Below are positions 1-64,000 of a stretch of DNA of 64,000 nt, one piece after another (position 1 is the stretch's first letter; every line of letters begins with the position of its first letter). Location: contig OZ260661.1 in assembly GCA_965285935.1 (NCBI GenBank), forward strand, positions 82,584,001-82,648,000. The letters run 5' to 3'. A program made the translations under genes and the position numbers. The notes under the pieces were generated by a model. It had not been told where the DNA came from, did not search any database, and was given only the letters and a program-made list of their open reading frames with translations. The stretch is from Ophelia neglecta (Eukaryota).

Positions 1-57
1 AAATGCTTTAAGAATTCTCCCTTCAATTAGGCGACAACCTTGCATGCCATAACAACG

Positions 58-3000
58 ATGCCCATCAAAGAGGAACCGTCGTGGATAGACATTAGGAGCA
101 AGCCACCACGGAAAGCCTCAAATCAAACCAGGGCTCAATGCACAGTTTGCGCGGACGAAGCAAGCGGCGTGTACTTCGGAGCTCTAGTCTGTCTGCCGTG
201 TAAAGTAAGTAGGCGCAATGTTACATGTAATGGGGAAAGAATCTTAATAAGTAGTAAACACATTTTTTAGTAAAAAAACAACAACAAAAAACACACGAAA
301 CTCAATGTTGTGAGAAGCAGTGATTTGTATTGCGGTAATGAAGGGGTATAACACGATAATATCATTTCAGCGACCTTTATTTTCATCTATTAGCCAAATC
401 ATGTAACACTATTATTGTGGTTCGAATATTCCCTTGATCATGATCCCCTTCTTATTAAATGGTTTACCAACTTTTATTTTGATTTGTGGCTGAAGTGCCA
501 ATATGAGGCAATTCCAGTCCAAAATGGTAGCCATGTTGGCTTTATGCAAATGAGACTGTTTGTGTCAAAGACCCATCTCTTTTATTTCGTTTTATTGCCT
601 AGTGTCCATTTAAAGAAGCTTCGCCGCTATGCTTTCCTCACGTTTAAATTGAAAATTAACAACTGTTGCTCTCTTAAGTCGAGTATGACGGTAATTTAAT
701 TTTAAGCAAACGACGTAAAGGGACATTATCCGTTTTTGTGACTTACTGCTTTTTTTATTTTTTCAACGGTCTTGTGAGTACTTATTTGCGCAATGCAATT
801 ATACATGGTTGAAAAGGGCAGCCATTGATAATGGGTACTCACGCCTTACGAACAGTTCCACTAAGGCCACAGTTTACATTGTAGCCTTTTGGTTTTCAAC
901 AGAGTTTCTTCATTCGGAGCACTAGAAATGGCCTTCCTATCTTCACGTGTCCAGAGAACCGAAAGTGTGACGTCAGTCGTCAGAACCGTTTGCGCTGCCA
1001 GAGCTGCCGTTATGACAGGTGTCTCCGCGTCGGAATGCGAAGAAAAGGTAAGCTTCAAGCAAACTACTACAATGCTTCTAATTCTGAGGCATCGTAGAAA
1101 AAACGTCTGCGGAATTGAGCTTCCCTTTTTAGTTTACCTCACCGAATGAATATATCGTATTTTTTACTTGTTTGTAATAATCTAGACTACTTTTCAAACA
1201 GTGAAATGGAAGAATATAATATTTAAAAGATCTATATACAATTTCGTAAATCTCGAGTTCACTTTTTCCTAGTTATAACACATCTAAGTTCCTAAATATT
1301 AGCGAACCGTAAGCGTATAGGCCTAATGTAGGCCAACGTGTATTTGGAGAGCAGTCAGTCTTCATTGCACAGTCTATAAGAGAAGTGAGGCTTATAGCCT
1401 ACTACCGTTTAATTATATAAGAGTACGTAGCTATTAAAACAAACTACTGTGTTTAAGTACTATAATCTTGTTTCAGAGAAGCCTGAAATAGTATATGCAA
1501 GGGAGGGCCAGGAATTGTGTAAGATTTGTGGAGACATTGCCAATGGCACCCACTTCGGTGTAGTTTCATGTGAAGGATGCAAGGTAGGTTTTTGCTTGCA
1601 ATAAGATGTATGTAAGAGATGGTTCGGAATTTGGTTGCAGGAGACATCTGGGAAAGGGGGGAAGCATAGGGTTAGGATTGGGGTTTATTGCATCCTAGAT
1701 AGGGGGTCTATAGTCCATGAGGATGTAATCTTTTCAACACATTCCTTCAGGGCGATGTTCCTCAATCCGAGCTTCGTTTAAAGTGTGCTTCCTTTGATGC
1801 AATTTTCATATAAGAGCGCAATTTCTTATCTGAGTGCCTCCTTGAGGAAGCCCTTTCTAATCTGATCGCGGTTCCTGTCGGAGGCTACCTGCTTGTCGGA
1901 CTCTGCTTTCTTTATTTGTTAACATGTCAGAGACACTTTCCTGTTCCCCTCGGACCCATCGCTATTAAGGCATGCTCCTTTGGTAGTGTACTTTCTTTGG
2001 AGCATGTTTCCTTTTCGGACATGCCTCTTGGGCTGCGATAGCCTATATTGTTGGGGAGGCTATTATCTGGCCCATAGGAGGAAAAGCTACTCCCCTCAAG
2101 ATGTGATGGTAAAAAATCATACACAACCTCTACCGCCCTCCACACAACTAGATAAGAAAAAGCTTGTTTAATAATCCATCTTATTATCATTTAGCTTATG
2201 TTTCTATTTACTGTCGTCCGTTTCTCCCCCATTAGAAGTTTTTCCGTCGAGGATTGGGTGAAGCTGATACCTATGTATGCAGATTTAACACAAAATGTGT
2301 AATCAACCCAAGAAATCGTAATGTGTGTCGTTACTGTCGATTCAGGAAATGTCTTGATGCAGGCATGTCTCGAGATGGTATGTTAAGAGTTTTTCCTCCT
2401 GCCACTAAGCATATAGTTTGATGCTCGAGGTATGGGATATTCGAATAACAGATAATTGTAACATGAGATATATCTATGCTACACTTTATACATGAATGAT
2501 AAAAATGACCAGCAATTACCATTTTTACTAGTTAGCAGTTTGTTCTGAGATAACATCGACAATACAGAAACGTGCTCTTGTTTTCAATTCACTTTTTAGC
2601 GATCCGTATGGGTAGGCCCAAAAATCCGGAAACCAATGGAAATGGCCAGCAAGGGTATAAGAAACACCAATATTTCTATGGAAAAAAGGTACAAACCGAC
2701 CAATGTATAAACATTGATGGTGGAAACATGAACGATGAAATGGAGAGCGACAAAGCGATGTTTATGCAATACGAGAAACCATCTTGTATTTATCAGTCAA
2801 TCCCGAACCCCGACTACATGAATATGCTAAATAAAAGGTTTGGAAACCACAGCGTTTGGATGGAAGATAGTGTTTTTACTTCCGGTGCCATCAGTATTGA
2901 GTCCACGTGTTATGATAATAACCAATGGCAGAACTCGCCCGGTGAGCCGGGGTATTTGTCACTGCCAGACAAAAGCACGGAAAACACACCGCCGGAGTCT

Positions 3001-5542
3001 GCCGGATGTCACGTGCTACCTACCATCGAAATAGACGAGATGGAAAGCATATTACAAAATCTAGAAAACCCTTACGCAACAACAGAACAGCCTAGAGATA
3101 TGGGAAACCCTGTGCAGCTCGTCGAACATTGTAGTATGCGACCTATTCATGGACAACTGCTTACCATGGACATCTGCTCAGGCAGGGGTCAGAGAGACAG
3201 TAGCGGATATTCCTCTTCAGACAGCCCATCTTCTCACGGCAGCCCCTTCTCAAATGACAGCCCATATCACACCCAGGACGAATACAATACAGTGTTTGAG
3301 TTTCCCAGCACTGGGAATGCATGTCGTGCAACATCCTCCCCACAGTATATGTTTGATCTGGAGGGCGCTGGCAGTATTTTCAGTCATTCTAACCGCGAAT
3401 TTCAGTTGGCGGAATGCAATATCGGGTCTTCAAGTTACCTCAATGTTAAGGAAATTCCCTCCTCCCACAACTCTCCACTCGGCTCACGGCCAAGGTCGGC
3501 AGTCGTCGACATGCTTGACACTGCCCTGCACAACTTCATCGATAACCACAGCGGTTTTATAGATGATTGCGGATCAGAGAATAAACCCAAGGAATCACTC
3601 ACTGCCAGTTCTGCCCTCAGTAAGGCCGAGCTAGTGAAGAGGAAGAAACGCCAGACACTGGAAAGAGTCAACAAGAATCTGTGCTGTTTCGACAGAAAAT
3701 ATTGGTACCGCGAATCCAAACTACCAAAAGGCAATGGGGTCTTCATACTTTCCCCAGCTCAAAAGGAAGTGGTCGACAAATTGCTTGAAAGCTACAAGGA
3801 GCTATTTGAATTATCACCTATGTTGGACAAAGTTTCGACATCCACATCTACTATTGACGACAGTAATACATCGGTTCGTTTATGACTGCTATATTCTTAT
3901 CAAACATCAAATTTCAACTTGTATACTGGATGTCGATTATCCTTTTTTCAAATTATGTAAGTTTATGCAATGCGCTTCTACTCTATAGAGAAAAAACGAT
4001 GAAGCGTATAAGACGAACAGACGACCCAAACTCGGTGTCTTTCTGAGAATGATGATCCCTTTAATACGGTACACCCTGGAATTACCAGGCATGGCACCAT
4101 TAAGGAATGTTTCGAAATGTTCCTTTAATTTGGAAATATTAAACAATGTCATTAACGATAAAAATAAATAACTGTTATATTTGAATGTTAAAGCCATTTC
4201 AACTCCTTACAAAGATATTCATCGAACCATGAAATTTTATACACTTCTTTTGAGTACGTAGCGTATTAACTCATTCTCTTTCTGTATATGCTAATGCCGT
4301 TTTATCAATGATAGGGATAAAATCTCTTTCACAAATGGACAAACATACTTTAATCCGCAAAGGAATATTTCACCTGATGATACTTTTGAAGTCCATGGAA
4401 AATTCGGGTCAAGAAAGCTCTCGGTTTGAGACAATATGGGGTCTTAGGATACCTCATAAACATCCTGCTTATCATATCAAAAAAGAATTGCAGAAAATTG
4501 GAAGAGACATAGACCAATTGGAACTTGACCGCATAGAGAAGGCCCTTATGTGTGCTCTGTCTGTCATAGCTGCAGGTAAATTTGACAGTGCCATTTTCTT
4601 TTGGGCTAATTATGAAAGGCGCTGGCGCGGCGGTCAGAGATAGAAAAGAAGAACTGTTATATAAGTGTGTCGCCAGTGTTGGGTTGAGAAGCCGCTAAGA
4701 TTAATTTTACAGTAGTGAAAGTGTAAAACAGTACTGGAATCAATCCATTGTAGGGATACTAATGTCAGGAACCGCTGTATCCATAATGCCTCTGCGCCTA
4801 CGCCTTTTATTTTCTTTGGACAAAATTCCCACTCCATAAACCTTTTTCAAAAGGGTGGAATTAATAAATTTGACTTGGCTTTGCCCAAACTCATATGGCA
4901 AATCACTGTCCTCAATGTGAAAGAATGACGAAACACATCTCAGACGTGTTGTTGATTATCAAACAAATATATTTACACGTGTATTGTTTACAGACTGGAA
5001 AAACCTGAGAGAGAAAGAGAAAGTAGCAGCTTTAAGGAAACCCATCCTTGACATCTATTATTCTTACATACAAGGTAACATTTTGCCAGCATTCTCGGAC
5101 CTATCTATTTATTAAGAACAGAAAGTCACCGGTATAGAGATGGGACTTACCATGACACCAAATAAGTAGTATCAATAAAAACAAAAACGGAAATGGATAT
5201 CCGGCAGACGGAGCAAATTCATCAAAACTGGTCCATTACTTACATAGGTCAGAAATCACCAGGAACCGTCAGCTGCAGACCCACAACTATAATTTGCATG
5301 CATCCTGAATCATGTGTTCATTGGCCTTCAGTCATTTGAACAGATATATTATTTCCTTCGTTTCGTTCTTAGGTAAATTTCCTAAGTCAGCCAAAAGGCT
5401 TGTCAGCGTAATGAAGACAATGACCAAAATCCGGGAGCTGTCGGCGTTCAGCGACCACTTTATCAGCCTTGTCCCGACCGAAGATTTTATGGACAATGAT
5501 TTGTCCCAGAGACTTGAAGAACTGGAAATAAAAGACAGCTGA
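58..5542 (+). CDS. Nuclear receptor with two tandem DNA-binding domains (2DBD-NR), ~808 aa, 9 coding exons
   Basis: Exons: 58(or 31)-204, 903-1047, 1477-1583, 2236-2377, 2600-3873, 3989-4088, 4315-4575, 4994-5074, 5373-5542; phases join into one ORF. DBD1: CTVC-x13-CLPCK|SFFIRS...CPENRKC-x9[14 protein letters not shown]. DBD2: CKIC-x13-CEGCK|KFFRRG...CRFNTKC-x9[17 protein letters not shown]|[11 protein letters not shown]: IRYTLELPG|[13 protein letters not shown] (H3-H5 signature), [19 protein letters not shown]|[17 protein letters not shown]. An AG at 29-30 suggests an upstream exon outside the window. The exon 5 donor could be 3831 or 3873. Confidence 0.93.
1685..2160 (-). mobile_element. 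Possible highly decayed non-LTR retrotransposon 3' fragment in NR intron 3
   Basis: Minus-strand reading with in-frame stops (VYDFLPS...; KGFLKEALR*...[13 protein letters not shown]...*) ends at an AATAAA. It loosely resembles the C-terminus of restriction-endonuclease-type non-LTR ORFs; similarity by eye only. Confidence 0.2.
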
Positions 5543-5934
5543 AGAGCTGATAATAAGGCAGAAACAAAATAACTGCGATATAGTATTTTGTAGGCTTTAC
5601 TTTGATTGTCAATGTAAGTTTTTCGAAAAAACCATTTGTGTGTTCGCCTATTTTGTTTCGGAACAGAGGTTTGTCAGATGTCTTATCTGTGCCTATATTG
5701 TTGCCTTTTTAACAAATATTTACGCTTGCTTAATTATAATATAAATATGCCCCACTATACATAGGTATTTGATAAGGCTCCACTGGGCATTGGTATTTGA
5801 TAAGACTGCATCATGTTCAAGTTATGGAACAAACAAATTGGAAATTTGGTCATGGTCATCCATTACTGTACAGAAACCTGTAGATAAGGGAGTTTTAAAA
5901 AAGCCTTTTAAAGCTAGATAGCCAGTCCCAGGGT

Positions 5935-6215
5935 ATCAAGAGAAGTACGGGCCCGAGGACGGGTCCCTGGGGGACCCCCCACGGAAGATGCACTGAATCT
6001 GATTGGACAGCTCCGATTCTAACAGACTGCCGGCAATACCCTTGACACTTAACATGGTTTCAATTCTAAGCAGAATGATATGGTCAATGGTGTCAAAGGC
6101 AGACCTTAAACCAAGGAGCACAAGAATAACAATGCCCTACTCATCTATGGTTGTAAGAATGCGGAGTAGACCCGTCTCCGCGGAGTGTCCAGGCTTGTAA
6201 GTTGACTGGAGGGGC
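5935..6215 (-). mobile_element. Degenerate CR1/L2-clade LINE reverse transcriptase fragment
   Basis: Minus strand carries RT motifs in the correct order, with deletions and a frameshift: QSTYKPGHSAETGLL (cf. QSAYRxxHSTETALL), LLGLRSAFDTIDHIILL (cf. LLDLSAAFDTxDHxILL) and GVPQGPVLGPVL (cf. GVPQGSVLGP). Confidence 0.85.
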
Positions 6216-7600
6216 GCATGCAGACCGCTAGTACACCTGGGAGAGTGGGAGCCGATCAGCAACCACTCTCTCGACGATTTTTGAGACGAAAGATAAATTG
6301 CTCACAGGTCTGTAATTATTTAGGTTGTTGGGGTCAGTTTCCTTCAAAAGAGGCGCTACATCAGGCCTCTTCGAATATCATAGCAGTCGGTACATCTCCA
6401 GATGCGAATAAGGAGTTTATTATAAGGGTGCACGTTGGCAATACTGCACCAATTGCTTATTTGAAAAGCCAAGAAGGCACTGGATCACGGAAGAACATGT
6501 GGATGATGGTGAAATCCCAATGAGTGAATGAGTGATGAAACGGGAAACAGGAACTAAATTGAAATCAATAAGTAAGGAGTAGGCAAAAAGGAGGCCAATT
6601 TGTCTGGAATTAAGATACGTTTATCTAGTGGTGAAGCAGGTACCTACTTGACACGAATAGGTGAGGAAGTAGGAATCAATTTCCGTTACTGTTCTGTCGC
6701 CTCTCTCGAGACAGTATTTTCGTCCCACTCACCTACCAGATTTTCATAAAATACGCTTTCCTTCTATCACCTATGCTTAACTACTTTGATCTTGTTCAAC
6801 TTTGATAGAACGTGTGAAAGGTCTCTGGTATTTTCTGATTCAATTTAAGTAGTGGTGCCACTGCCAATTGAATACCAGATATGACAGACACTTGGTTCCC
6901 CATATAGGGCCGTCTCAGGCATTTTTCCTATTGGCTTAGTAAATTCTGTCCGCCAAAACGGTTTCTTGTTTCCTTCATTTTTCTGGTATATTTATTTTTT
7001 GGTGACTGGGTTGGGAATTACATAATATATGTATCTAAACAACATAGCATTTTTATTAAACAGTTTAACTGTTTTCATGCTTATTCAATGCCTAGCGGTA
7101 ATGGCATTGCCTTCAGTGGCACCTGGTTTTGTTAGCCTAGGGTAGTGTGTCTCACAACCACAGCTTCTGTATAGGCAAGCAGGTTATCAGGGTGACTTTA
7201 TCACCATTAATTACCTATAATTTGGCCTACTATAATGGTAAAAGCGGCGTATGGCTTAATATTGAACGAATGAGATGATTGTGATAATTGTCGTCCATAC
7301 ATAGGTGTAAATGTGAATTTAATCGATTCTAAATAGCCTGAACCACACAAGCCACATAACTACTTACGTGCAAATTAAGCATAGTCTATGTATTGTTATT
7401 GTTTTAATATCATTGTTTATCAAAATTTGAAATCATAATATACACAGAAAAAAATATCCCTTTACTATTTAACTTTAGAATATTAATTCAAACCATTCTT
7501 AAGTGATTAAGTTCTGCTTTAGGATACGGAATAGATAGAGCCAATACTTGTAGAATGGTCTTAAAGTTTTAATTACTATCGAATCACAGTAATGAACATT

Positions 7601-9051
7601 TTAGTTAACTATTCCCGCGCGACTTAATTTGGTGGAGATCAAAGCATCCAGTTGAGGTTCGGCAATCTTGAATGGAAAAATATTTCTTCTGTCGGAAAAA
7701 GGCACAAATGAGATATCATTCTGATCCAGCTGCTTGAACGTTGGCTTTCCAGATAGAGGAATGAAATGATTTGCTGCTAAATTCATAATTAATTGTGGCT
7801 TCACGAATAAATTCACTTTGCTGCCAATATTAGAGGACAACCTAAACCCTCCATTCTCATCAATTGCACTTTCAAAGGAACCTGACCGAACCAGCTGCTT
7901 CAAATTGTGAAATTTCGTGCCAAATGCTGGCCACTGATCATGTGATGTTACGAGAACATAGCGATATTTCATCATATTGGTATATAGACAGTGGTTCATT
8001 GCAGCCTCATCGCTCACAATTGCTTCTGTCTGCTCGGCTACGACGGTCCAATTGGTTATGGTCAACAGTCTAAATGTCTCGTTTTGATAAAATTCAATAA
8101 CCTTCTGCAAGGTCTCGGATATATTAGTGGTGTAAAGATTTACATGATCCGCTCCTAGGAGCCGAAGATACTCGAGCCACATAGCAAAATTACGAGAGTT
8201 TCCCTCTTCGTAGTGACCAGCCATGTTATAAGGTCTTACACAAATCCCTACATCCCACATAGGAGCCATAACTCCCTGAAAAGTCAACTGATTGAGGGAT
8301 AAAAGGTTATGGCTGAATCCACATTGATCATGCGCCAACATCACCTGCACGGGGTCGTCATGTTGTTGAACAGGGCAAGAGAACGCCAGAACATCCATCA
8401 ACGACTTCCGGCTTTCAACTGAGAAAAGAAACCGAAGACATGGTAATCAAAAGCAGTATTTTGTTCACACACAAAAATGCAATATTTCTTACTGATTATA
8501 TTTTACCTACCTGGTGCATAATCTGAACCATTTCCTGCCAACAAAATGACTGAATAAGCGGGAACACTACATATATTAGCAGGCGAACTTTCACAATTGT
8601 AATTACAGTACAGTTGGGCACCTGGGTTTAATCCGATGGCGAGTAGCCTGATGAACTTTTGGTCACTTAGCCGATCGTCCACGTGACCGGATATTGCATG
8701 AACATTGGTGCTTCCAAGAGTTTGATACAATCCTACATGGCGGACTGGTAGACCACCAATGTTATGAAGTTCAAACGCAGAGCCAGAACAAATCTTACGA
8801 TCTCTACTCTTAGGTAGAATGGTGAGCTTGTATAAAAGTCCTTTTACGTAACTAGAAAACGGTATTTTTAGACTGTTTTTCCAATAGTAAAGCTCTTCGC
8901 CAACTGCCAGCTCCGTGTTATGACTTGTGTGGTAGTTTGTAAGTAATAGCTGTATCCCTAAACACATGCCAACCACGAATGCCACTTGAAAGTTACATAA
9001 AAACTTCTTGGTATACAGGATCATAGCCCTTGTTGAAATATTCCGCAACAT
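7601..9051 (-). CDS. Glycosyltransferase family 92 (DUF23, galt-1-like) type II membrane protein, ~452 aa, 2 coding exons
   Basis: Exons 9051-8511 and 8418-7601 join through a 92-bp GT-AG phase-1 intron. N-terminal signal anchor (VAFVVGMCLGIQLLL). GT92-like motifs: GICVRP, FAMWLEYLRLLGADHVNLY, LQKVIEFY, AMNHCLY..MMKYRYVLV. Confidence 0.8.
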
Positions 9052-21031: not shown

Positions 21032-54518
<33,487 letters not shown>

Positions 54519-63421: not shown

Positions 63422-63594
63422 TTATGTATTGATGAACGTTTCCTGAAACAGCTGGGGAATTGTAATGCCTTTGTACGTGACTGGGTCAGACATGATCTGA
63501 CTGACTGCCTTATGGTGGACTAGGTTGGCCTTTACCAGCTCGCTTAGCCGCAGTAGTATGAGACCATGTCGATTGGTGGTTTCTCCATATGTTT
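63422..63594 (-). CDS. Terminal coding exon of a second nuclear receptor (LBD helices 10-12); the rest of the gene lies beyond the window
   Basis: Pyrimidine-rich acceptor TTTTATCATTTTAG, then xTYGETTNRHGLILLRLSELVKANLVHH...ITIPQLFQETFINT*. This matches the H10/11 pattern RFxxLLLxLxELRxxN and the AF-2 pattern PxLFxExF. Confidence 0.75.
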
Positions 63595-64000
63595 CTAAAA
63601 TGATAAAAGCAAACAAGGTTGACAAAAAGTAATCACAAGAAAGCTTCAGGTACACAATCGTGTGACTACAAATAAATTGCGTTTGGCTGCTGAGAACACA
63701 CAAACTTTTATGAATTTATTTTAGTAACTGAGGTAGTAGTGTCCTATATACTACTTGGAAAAAATTGACCGGCTTAAACACACCATGCACTCAATATAAA
63801 GTCTGAGGCTTAAAGGTTTTGGAATTTAAAGCCATTGAGTGGTGGTGGCACTGGCAGCAGACGACAAGGCCCAATTTATTTTAGACTTGCAGGATATAAC
63901 ATATCTGTCTATAAGATTATCTATGAGTAGAAAAGTGCCCTTATACTAGTGCCTGCCAATCTAATGCAAAATTTTATGGGGTAGGGGGCAGCACTGCTGA

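Follow-up and report, generated by a model that had tools for sequence, protein, structure and literature searches.

Nuclear receptors that carry a tandem pair of DNA-binding domains (DBDs), the 2DBD-NRs, form a little-studied subfamily that is known from Spiralia, echinoderms, amphioxus and some nematodes (PMC10497141) and is divided into groups A, B and C (Wu & LoVerde 2023, PMC10497141). Group B (2DBD-NRB, here NRB) carries the P-P module LPCKS-EGCKK and has been reported from Mollusca, Annelida, Brachiopoda and Phoronida; the spacer between the two DBDs of 2DBD-NRs measures 17-22 residues, and the G-box behind the second DBD has the form KXGR(P/H) in NRB (PMC10497141). The P-box CLPCKS was first reported in the first DBD of the oyster receptor Cg2DBD-delta (Vogeler 2014, PMC4070562). 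Here we describe a gene of this type from Ophelia neglecta. The window, i.e. the whole stretch of DNA that was analysed, comprises 64,000 nucleotides (assembly GCA_965285935.1, contig OZ260661.1, positions 82,584,001 to 82,648,000 of the forward strand; C1:82584001-82648000 in the genome coordinates used below). We interpret window 58-5542 (+) as a single protein-coding gene, with about 808 codons spread over nine exons, that encodes a 2DBD-NRB (NR7B) nuclear receptor, and put the probability of this reading at about 85 per cent. The gene is a genuine, apparently intact and rather divergent new member of the catalogued NRB group, not a new kind of receptor. A preliminary description of the locus had called the architecture rare and had placed it in flatworms and a few other lophotrochozoans. 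The family is indeed rare; the range given there is out of date, having widened since 2023, and the spread of two-DBD receptors beyond Spiralia makes the architecture less rare than stated.

The four small exons at the 5' end of the gene encode two complete C4 DBDs, as had been proposed. They were scanned with Pfam zf-C4 (PF00105; cut-off 21.1 bits) one by one, as in all the family, library and structure searches reported here; joined translations served for profile scoring, alignment and trees. All four exons score above the cut-off, and the two halves of the domain alternate as half1-half2-half1-half2: zf-C4 positions 2-24 are matched at window 40-204 (E 1.5e-4, 22.6 bits), positions 25-70 at 903-1046 (E 1.4e-12, 48.3 bits), positions 2-24 again at 1479-1583 (E 9.9e-9, 36.0 bits) and positions 26-70 at 2236-2376 (E 4.3e-14, 53.2 bits). 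All 16 zinc cysteines are present (16/16). A motif scan places C-X2-C-X13-C-X2-C at 139-204 and 1518-1583, and C-X5-C-X9-C-X2-C at 948-1007 and 2278-2337. The P-box of DBD1 is CLPCKS (190-204/903-905), followed by FFIRS, and that of DBD2 is CEGCKK (1569-1583/2236-2238), followed by FFRRG. Counted on the spliced sequence, between the terminal GM of DBD1 and the first cysteine of DBD2, the linker has the 17 residues given earlier. Within it, an intron splits the motif E(K/R)P, and does so identically in each of the five NRB paralogues of this genome. The G-box behind DBD2 reads RMGRP, which fits the general grip box RXGRZP, its first residue being R where NRB has K.

Both DBDs are cut by introns at the same two sites, in phase 0 after CK and in phase 1 thirteen residues past the last Cys. 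The identity of these sites is consistent with the second DBD having arisen when a cassette of two exons was duplicated. Introns and synteny are not discussed in the 2023 review of 2DBD-NRs (PMC10497141).

The pair CLPCKS/CEGCKK had been proposed as that of the oyster 2DBD-delta type, and both the original oyster report (Vogeler 2014, PMC4070562) and the published NRB signature (PMC10497141) bear this out. When exon 2 was used as a library query, most of the proteins retrieved had two matched stretches. The best library matches carry the same P-box pair; these annotated proteins come from Solemya, Pecten, Magallana gigas (XP_011428801), Pinctada, Mytilus, unionids and gastropods. Mollusc NRB proteins align contiguously and in order with exons 1, 2, 3, 4 and 7; in the Mytilus protein P0009, for example, exons 1-4 have their counterparts at residues 84, 106, 155 and 190, and exon 7 has its own at residues 744-839. 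Identity to the best bivalve member is 68 per cent over the DBD region. In DBD1, conservation of LPCKS followed by F(F/Y)IR extends from bivalves to this genome and speaks for selection on the domain.

Phylogenetic analysis of the region from DBD1 to DBD2 (quick IQ-TREE searches) places the gene within the spiralian NRB (CLPCKS) clade, with support values of 85 and 98 in two trees (Shimodaira-Hasegawa-like approximate likelihood-ratio test, SH-aLRT). Inside this clade the gene belongs, with a long branch, to a subgroup without molluscs that also holds Lingula and four paralogues from the same genome (genes C, D, E and F below; the gene described here is gene A). It shares with Cg2DBD-delta and the NRB group the tandem C4 DBDs and single ligand-binding domain (LBD), the CLPCKS-CEGCKK pair, a linker of 17 residues beginning (K/R)EKPE, a G-box after DBD2 and a divergent LBD of NR1-like pattern. 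It differs from bivalve NRB proteins in DBD1, which has a canonical C-X5-C D-box and FFIRS, whereas the bivalve proteins have FYIRC and an extra Cys. It differs from the group as a whole in the first residue of the G-box (RMGRP, with K in the group) and in a more degenerate LBD signature and activation function 2 (AF-2) region. The NRA or NR7A receptors (Schistosoma mansoni 2DBD-alpha, 2DBD-beta and 2DBD-gamma; Echinococcus Eg2DBD-alpha) also combine two DBDs with one LBD, and the intron positions of the present gene are those of the two NRA genes of this genome (genes B and G). In contrast, the NRA P-boxes are CEACKK-CEGCKG, and NRA forms a separate clade (SH-aLRT 99). In its motifs, DBD2 resembles the monomer-binding receptors Rev-erb/ROR/E75 (NR1D/F): its P-box is of the EGCK type with FFRR behind it, and there is a C-terminal grip box, RxGRxP. 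This suggests that an extended half-site would be recognised. The resemblance is limited to DBD2, and those receptors have a single DBD.

Downstream of the DBDs there is a single LBD, again in agreement with the preliminary description, although it is not seen by Pfam. It was found with an NRB C-terminus profile, for which the C-terminal 330 residues of 11 mollusc two-DBD proteins were used and which was run against the stop-to-stop frames of the window. The frame 4254-4640, which holds the main LBD exon (exon 7), matches with 67 bits (E 4e-21). In the frame 4921-5112 (exon 8), profile positions 249-278 are matched (E 1e-3), and this match runs on from that of exon 7 over the junction without a break. 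Exon 9 is aligned to the profile within the joined model only, up to position 313. In tblastn searches with the NRB proteins of Mytilus, Haliotis and Biomphalaria, exon 7 was matched with E-values of 2e-9 to 1.5e-8. The residues of Mytilus P0009 that align with exon 7 (744-839) fall within the match of that protein to Pfam Hormone_recep (PF00104), which spans residues 725-902. Two gastropod homologues also pass PF00104, and three accepted members of the group, including the oyster protein, fail it; a weak LBD is therefore a trait of the family.

An AlphaFold model of exon 7 (86 residues, from an alignment of 20 homologues; mean predicted local distance difference test score, pLDDT, 74) has the predicted fold helix, beta-hairpin, helix, helix. 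With VIA-align, all of the 50 top entries (50/50) are nuclear-receptor LBDs, with Z of 4.3-5.4 over 83-86 residues, and the match always covers helices H4-H8 (RXR-alpha 289-378, GR 584-674, AR 725-815). These Z values are modest, and so they lend support without being proof. Foldseek on the same model gave only E-values >1, yet its list consists almost wholly of nuclear-receptor LBDs, and a phmmer search of the LBD exon against the PDB sequences returned a chance match only. By its profile match, with modest further support from the predicted fold, the C-terminal part is a divergent nuclear-receptor LBD.

The nine exons joined give a reading frame of 2427 nt (808 codons) with no internal stop (0 in the joined translation). 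The order of the domains is a short N-terminus, DBD1, the linker, DBD2, the G-box extension RMGRP, a hinge and the divergent LBD. All junctions are GT-AG and in phase, save one tentative GC-AG. Exon 1 (58..204, +) has a likely ATG at 58 and encodes a short A/B region, the first zinc finger of DBD1 (139-204) and the P-box CLPCK; its donor GTAAGT is at 205. An in-frame stop is present at 28-30, the ATG has A at -3, and in gene D an ATG similarly stands 21 codons ahead of the first Cys. The 5' end of the gene at this ATG is provisional. Exon 2 (903..1047, +; acceptor cag, donor G/GTAAGC, phase 1) completes the recognition helix of DBD1 with SFFIRS and also encodes the second zinc finger and GMRRK. 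Exon 3 (1477..1583, +) has a phase-1 acceptor, the codon split between exons 2 and 3 being G/AG (Glu), and encodes the linker, the first zinc finger of DBD2 and the P-box CEGCK. Exon 4 (2236..2377, +; phase-1 donor G/GTATGT) encodes KFFRRG and the second zinc finger of DBD2 and ends with GMSRD. The three DBD junctions, 204/903, 1047/1477 and 1583/2236, are all GT...AG, in phases 0, 1 and 0; they read GTAAGT...cag, G/GTAAGC...cag and GTAGGT...tag.

Exon 5 (2600..3873, +) occupies 424 codons of a 437-codon open frame. It starts with AIRMGRPKN at 2600, and thus with the C-terminal extension that contains the G-box, continues with a long Ser/Asn-rich hinge of about 400 residues, which is disordered, and ends with LBD helix 1 near 3700-3820, where its tail aligns with the helix-1 region (YW...Y) of the NRB profile. 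No Pfam family was found in the hinge exon, nor any relatives by a word search, whose reach was limited to proteins of 235-747 residues and which therefore says little. The donor of exon 5 is tentative (3873/GTTCGT, with an alternative at 3831). Exon 6 is also tentative (3989..4088, +; 100 nt); it would encode LBD helix 3, ending ...YTLELP(G), between an acceptor tag and a GC donor, CAG/GCATGG, so that the downstream intron is GC-AG (CAG/GCATGG ... gatag/GG). This exon is phase-compatible, and a separate exon of paralogue E ends ...SLPG at the equivalent position; alone, exon 6 is not significant against the NRB C-terminus profile. Exon 7 (4315..4575, +) encodes LBD helices 3/4-8 and contains the core of the LBD signature (13 residues). 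Exon 8 (4994..5074, +; phase 1 at both ends, GT-AG) encodes helices 8-9. Exon 9 (5373..5542, +), in phase with exon 8, encodes helices 10-11 and a degenerate AF-2 region and ends at the stop TGA 5540-5542. Exons 7, 8 and 9 are joined by GT-AG introns in phase 1.

Several ways of joining this region were compared. With exon 6 included, the score of the joined model against the NRB profile is 116 bits, in a single unbroken match from helix 1 to helix 11; the rival joins 3821/4262 and 3862/4315 score 104 bits (in two pieces) and 100 bits, respectively. A start of exon 7 at 4262, to which the profile alignment ran upstream, was rejected because paralogues E and F have their acceptor exactly at PG/F, which is 4314/4315 here. 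A mini-exon in another frame (EKTMKRIRR...) was dropped, as it requires two weak donors.

A number of observations weigh against our interpretation of the locus. The region between helices 1 and 3 holds two weak or non-canonical splice sites (GTTCGT and GC), and this part of the model is therefore provisional. Pfam Hormone_recep gave no match on five ORFs (open reading frames) of the LBD region or at the locus in a whole-genome scan. The LBD signature, or Ti motif, of 20 residues, (F,W,Y)(A,S,I)(K,R,E,G)x4(F,L)x2(L,V,I)x3(D,S)(Q,K)x2(L,V)(L,I,F), fits at six of its nine constrained positions when read with the tentative exon 6 (positions 2, 3 and 8 misfit). The AF-2 core, which in NRB has the form hydrophobic-hydrophobic-x-(E/K)-hydrophobic-hydrophilic at the C-terminus, is not clearly recognisable: the C-terminal 10 residues align with LFDKLD of the oyster protein, and the second hydrophobic position is Glu. 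The terminal branch of the gene (0.61-0.91, versus 0.35-0.43 for gene D) is longer than those of the other four NRB paralogues, and no close orthologue was found among 1.84 billion representatives with exon 2 as the query (best match 60 per cent over exon 2). To our knowledge, no DNA element is known for any 2DBD-NR, so that the binding model proposed below is drawn from canonical receptor structures. The degenerate LBD, the weak splice sites around exon 6, the long branch and the missing orthologue would also suit a copy of a more conservative NRB gene, for example gene D (C1:88.755 Mb), that is in decay or not expressed; such a copy would have lost its function, and its frame would still be open by the chance of a recent origin. 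We consider this reading very unlikely in view of the nine-exon frame of 808 codons without an internal stop, the 16 intact zinc cysteines and the family-specific P-boxes. Moreover, the hinge, which is unconserved, keeps a frame open for 437 codons, which is not expected in neutral sequence of 40% GC, and the failure of Pfam Hormone_recep is shared by several accepted mollusc NRB proteins, that of oyster included.

Indirect evidence points to both DBDs in a single chain. Exon 2 contains no stop and the phases agree across every junction. Full-length two-DBD ORFs of Mytilus and oyster lie on intron-less Logan contigs of 3-4 kb, and flatworm two-DBD members have been cloned as cDNAs (PMC6844482), so these homologues carry both DBDs in one mRNA. 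Gene structure and homologue transcripts suggest that the same would hold in this species. There is, however, one structural argument on the other side: exons 3 and 4 (window 1477-2377) form a symmetric phase 1-1 cassette of 249 nt. Its skipping keeps the frame, exon 2 joined to exon 5 reading ...GMRRK-A-IRMGRP, and a minor product with DBD1 only is thus possible. A downstream start would give the converse product with DBD2 only, and the RefSeq-predicted Biomphalaria isoform X5 (P0184), which starts at the linker, has this form. That single-DBD receptors of either kind are made beside or instead of the two-DBD chain is nevertheless unlikely, since both DBDs are intact in all seven two-DBD paralogues of this genome and across phyla, and are found together in the homologous transcripts and cDNAs. 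Isoform X5, whose first residue is the Met of the GM motif, could be an incomplete prediction, and oyster ORFs of 587 residues look like intron read-through ahead of the hinge exon; as single-DBD or DBD-less isoforms, both were judged weak evidence. Hardly credible is a division of the locus into two genes, in which exons 1-2 would belong to a separate upstream gene and the receptor would consist of exons 3-9 only. The provisional 5' end and the Pfam match of exon 1, the weakest of the four (22.6 bits), would be in keeping with it. It is opposed by the exon 2/3 junction, across which the homologues align gap-free; both sides of it are in phase 1, no stop closes exon 2, and exon 3 opens with the family's conserved E(K/R)P linker. 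A two-exon gene encoding a DBD only would have no counterpart among the matches.

In canonical DBDs of the oestrogen receptor (ER)/NR1 type, the bases are contacted by the first and fourth residues of the P-box and by the basic pair after FF. This set is complete in DBD2 (E, K, R and R), which also has the RxGRxP grip box, a minor-groove grip as in Rev-erb/ROR, and should thus bind an extended AGGTCA-type half-site. The recognition helix of DBD1 keeps K and the second R, with Leu in place of Glu, Ile in place of the first basic residue and Pro at the helix start. The persistence of this unusual helix from bivalves to the present genome makes a functional role with a different specificity probable. 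We propose that DBD2 would serve as the anchor of the protein, on an AGGTCA-like half-site extended at its 5' side, and that DBD1, tethered 17 residues upstream, would read a second, non-canonical site beside the anchor. If the LBD forms homodimers, as those of flatworm members do, four DBDs would be available per dimer. Flatworm 2DBD LBDs form homodimers without RXR pairing, and the reading of two half-sites by one chain, or of four by a dimer, is a hypothesis already present in the literature (PMC10497141). What the sequence shows is the exons with their phases, the identity of the domains and the family to which the gene belongs; the DNA specificity, dimerisation and ligand dependence of the receptor, and the use of both DBDs in one mRNA of this species, are inferred.

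A whole-genome zf-C4 scan combined with motif reading revealed seven intact two-DBD genes, five NRB and two NRA, all with the 16 cysteines and with identical intron positions and phases. These counts are lower bounds, i.e. at least five NRB-type and at least two NRA-type genes. The NRB genes are the present gene A (C1:82.584 Mb; DBD1 P-box CLPCKS), gene C (C1:52.890 Mb, C1:52890448-52892257, +; CVPCKT), gene D (C1:88755360-88760248, +; CLPCKS), gene E (C8:31.860 Mb, C8:31860479-31880557, +; CLPCKT) and gene F (C12:36.392 Mb, C12:36369061-36392242, -; CIPCKA). The NRA genes, with the P-box pair CEACKK-CEGCKG, are gene B (C1:82.653 Mb, -) and gene G (C5:51.881 Mb, C5:51874003-51881085, -), the latter pairing with a Capitella teleta fragment in the trees (SH-aLRT 99-100), which is in keeping with an annelid genome. 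In the 2023 survey, by contrast, the maxima per species were six two-DBD genes and three NRB genes (PMC10497141). In every pair of the five NRB genes (10/10), conservation is lower in DBD1 (mean identity 53%) than in DBD2 (68%), and the DBD2 sequence CEGCKK-FFRR is common to all five.

Taken together, the gene and its six paralogues offer a series of naturally occurring variants of DBD1 combined with a constant DBD2, which would be useful for working out the role of the second DBD. This series and the NRA neighbour described below are the more original by-products of the analysis, as the architecture alone no longer surprises specialists. The planarian receptor nhr-1 is a 2DBD-NR, of the NRA group. 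In one study, no reproductive organs developed in worms after knock-down of nhr-1 (PMC12654950).

The NRA gene B lies about 58 kb from gene A, in convergent orientation. Its last LBD exon is inside the window (63431-63631, -; profile E 4e-12); the gene continues past the window end (C1:82648219-82653750), with its four DBD exons 2.7-5.7 kb beyond that end. The chance of any two of the seven genes lying within 70 kb of each other is about 0.004 (762 Mb). In Haliotis rubra, P0045 (the NRA protein) and P0018 (one of the NRB type) are encoded on scaffolds that differ in length, and hence on different ones, which indicates that NRA-NRB linkage is not universal. It is conceivable, although doubtful, that the seven genes reflect a lineage-specific radiation of two-DBD receptors in which DBD2 would be the constant anchor and DBD1 a variable second reader, the NRB and NRA genes 58 kb apart being the remnant of an ancient tandem pair that gave rise to both groups.

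Three DBDs about 8 kb apart at C9:48176039-48192848 (+) were considered as a further multi-DBD gene and set aside, as they look like tandem single-DBD genes; the trio is probably a tandem array of such receptor genes. The first DBD of this array has an unusual P-box, CDPCK.

Between genes A and B, the window contains a GT92 glycosyltransferase gene and a Delta/Serrate-type ligand gene. The former is seen as two adjacent ORFs at 7601-9051 (-), of which the ORF of 266 residues matches Glycosyltransferase family 92 (E 1.2e-16). The latter comprises exons of a Delta/Serrate-type Notch ligand at 21032-45134 (+), with MNNL at 21032-21430, DSL at 39548-39943 and EGF repeats at 44664-45134. Just past the stop of gene A, at about 5895-6350 (-), there are short ORFs that, by eye, resemble a reverse-transcriptase fragment of a non-LTR (non-long terminal repeat) retroelement.

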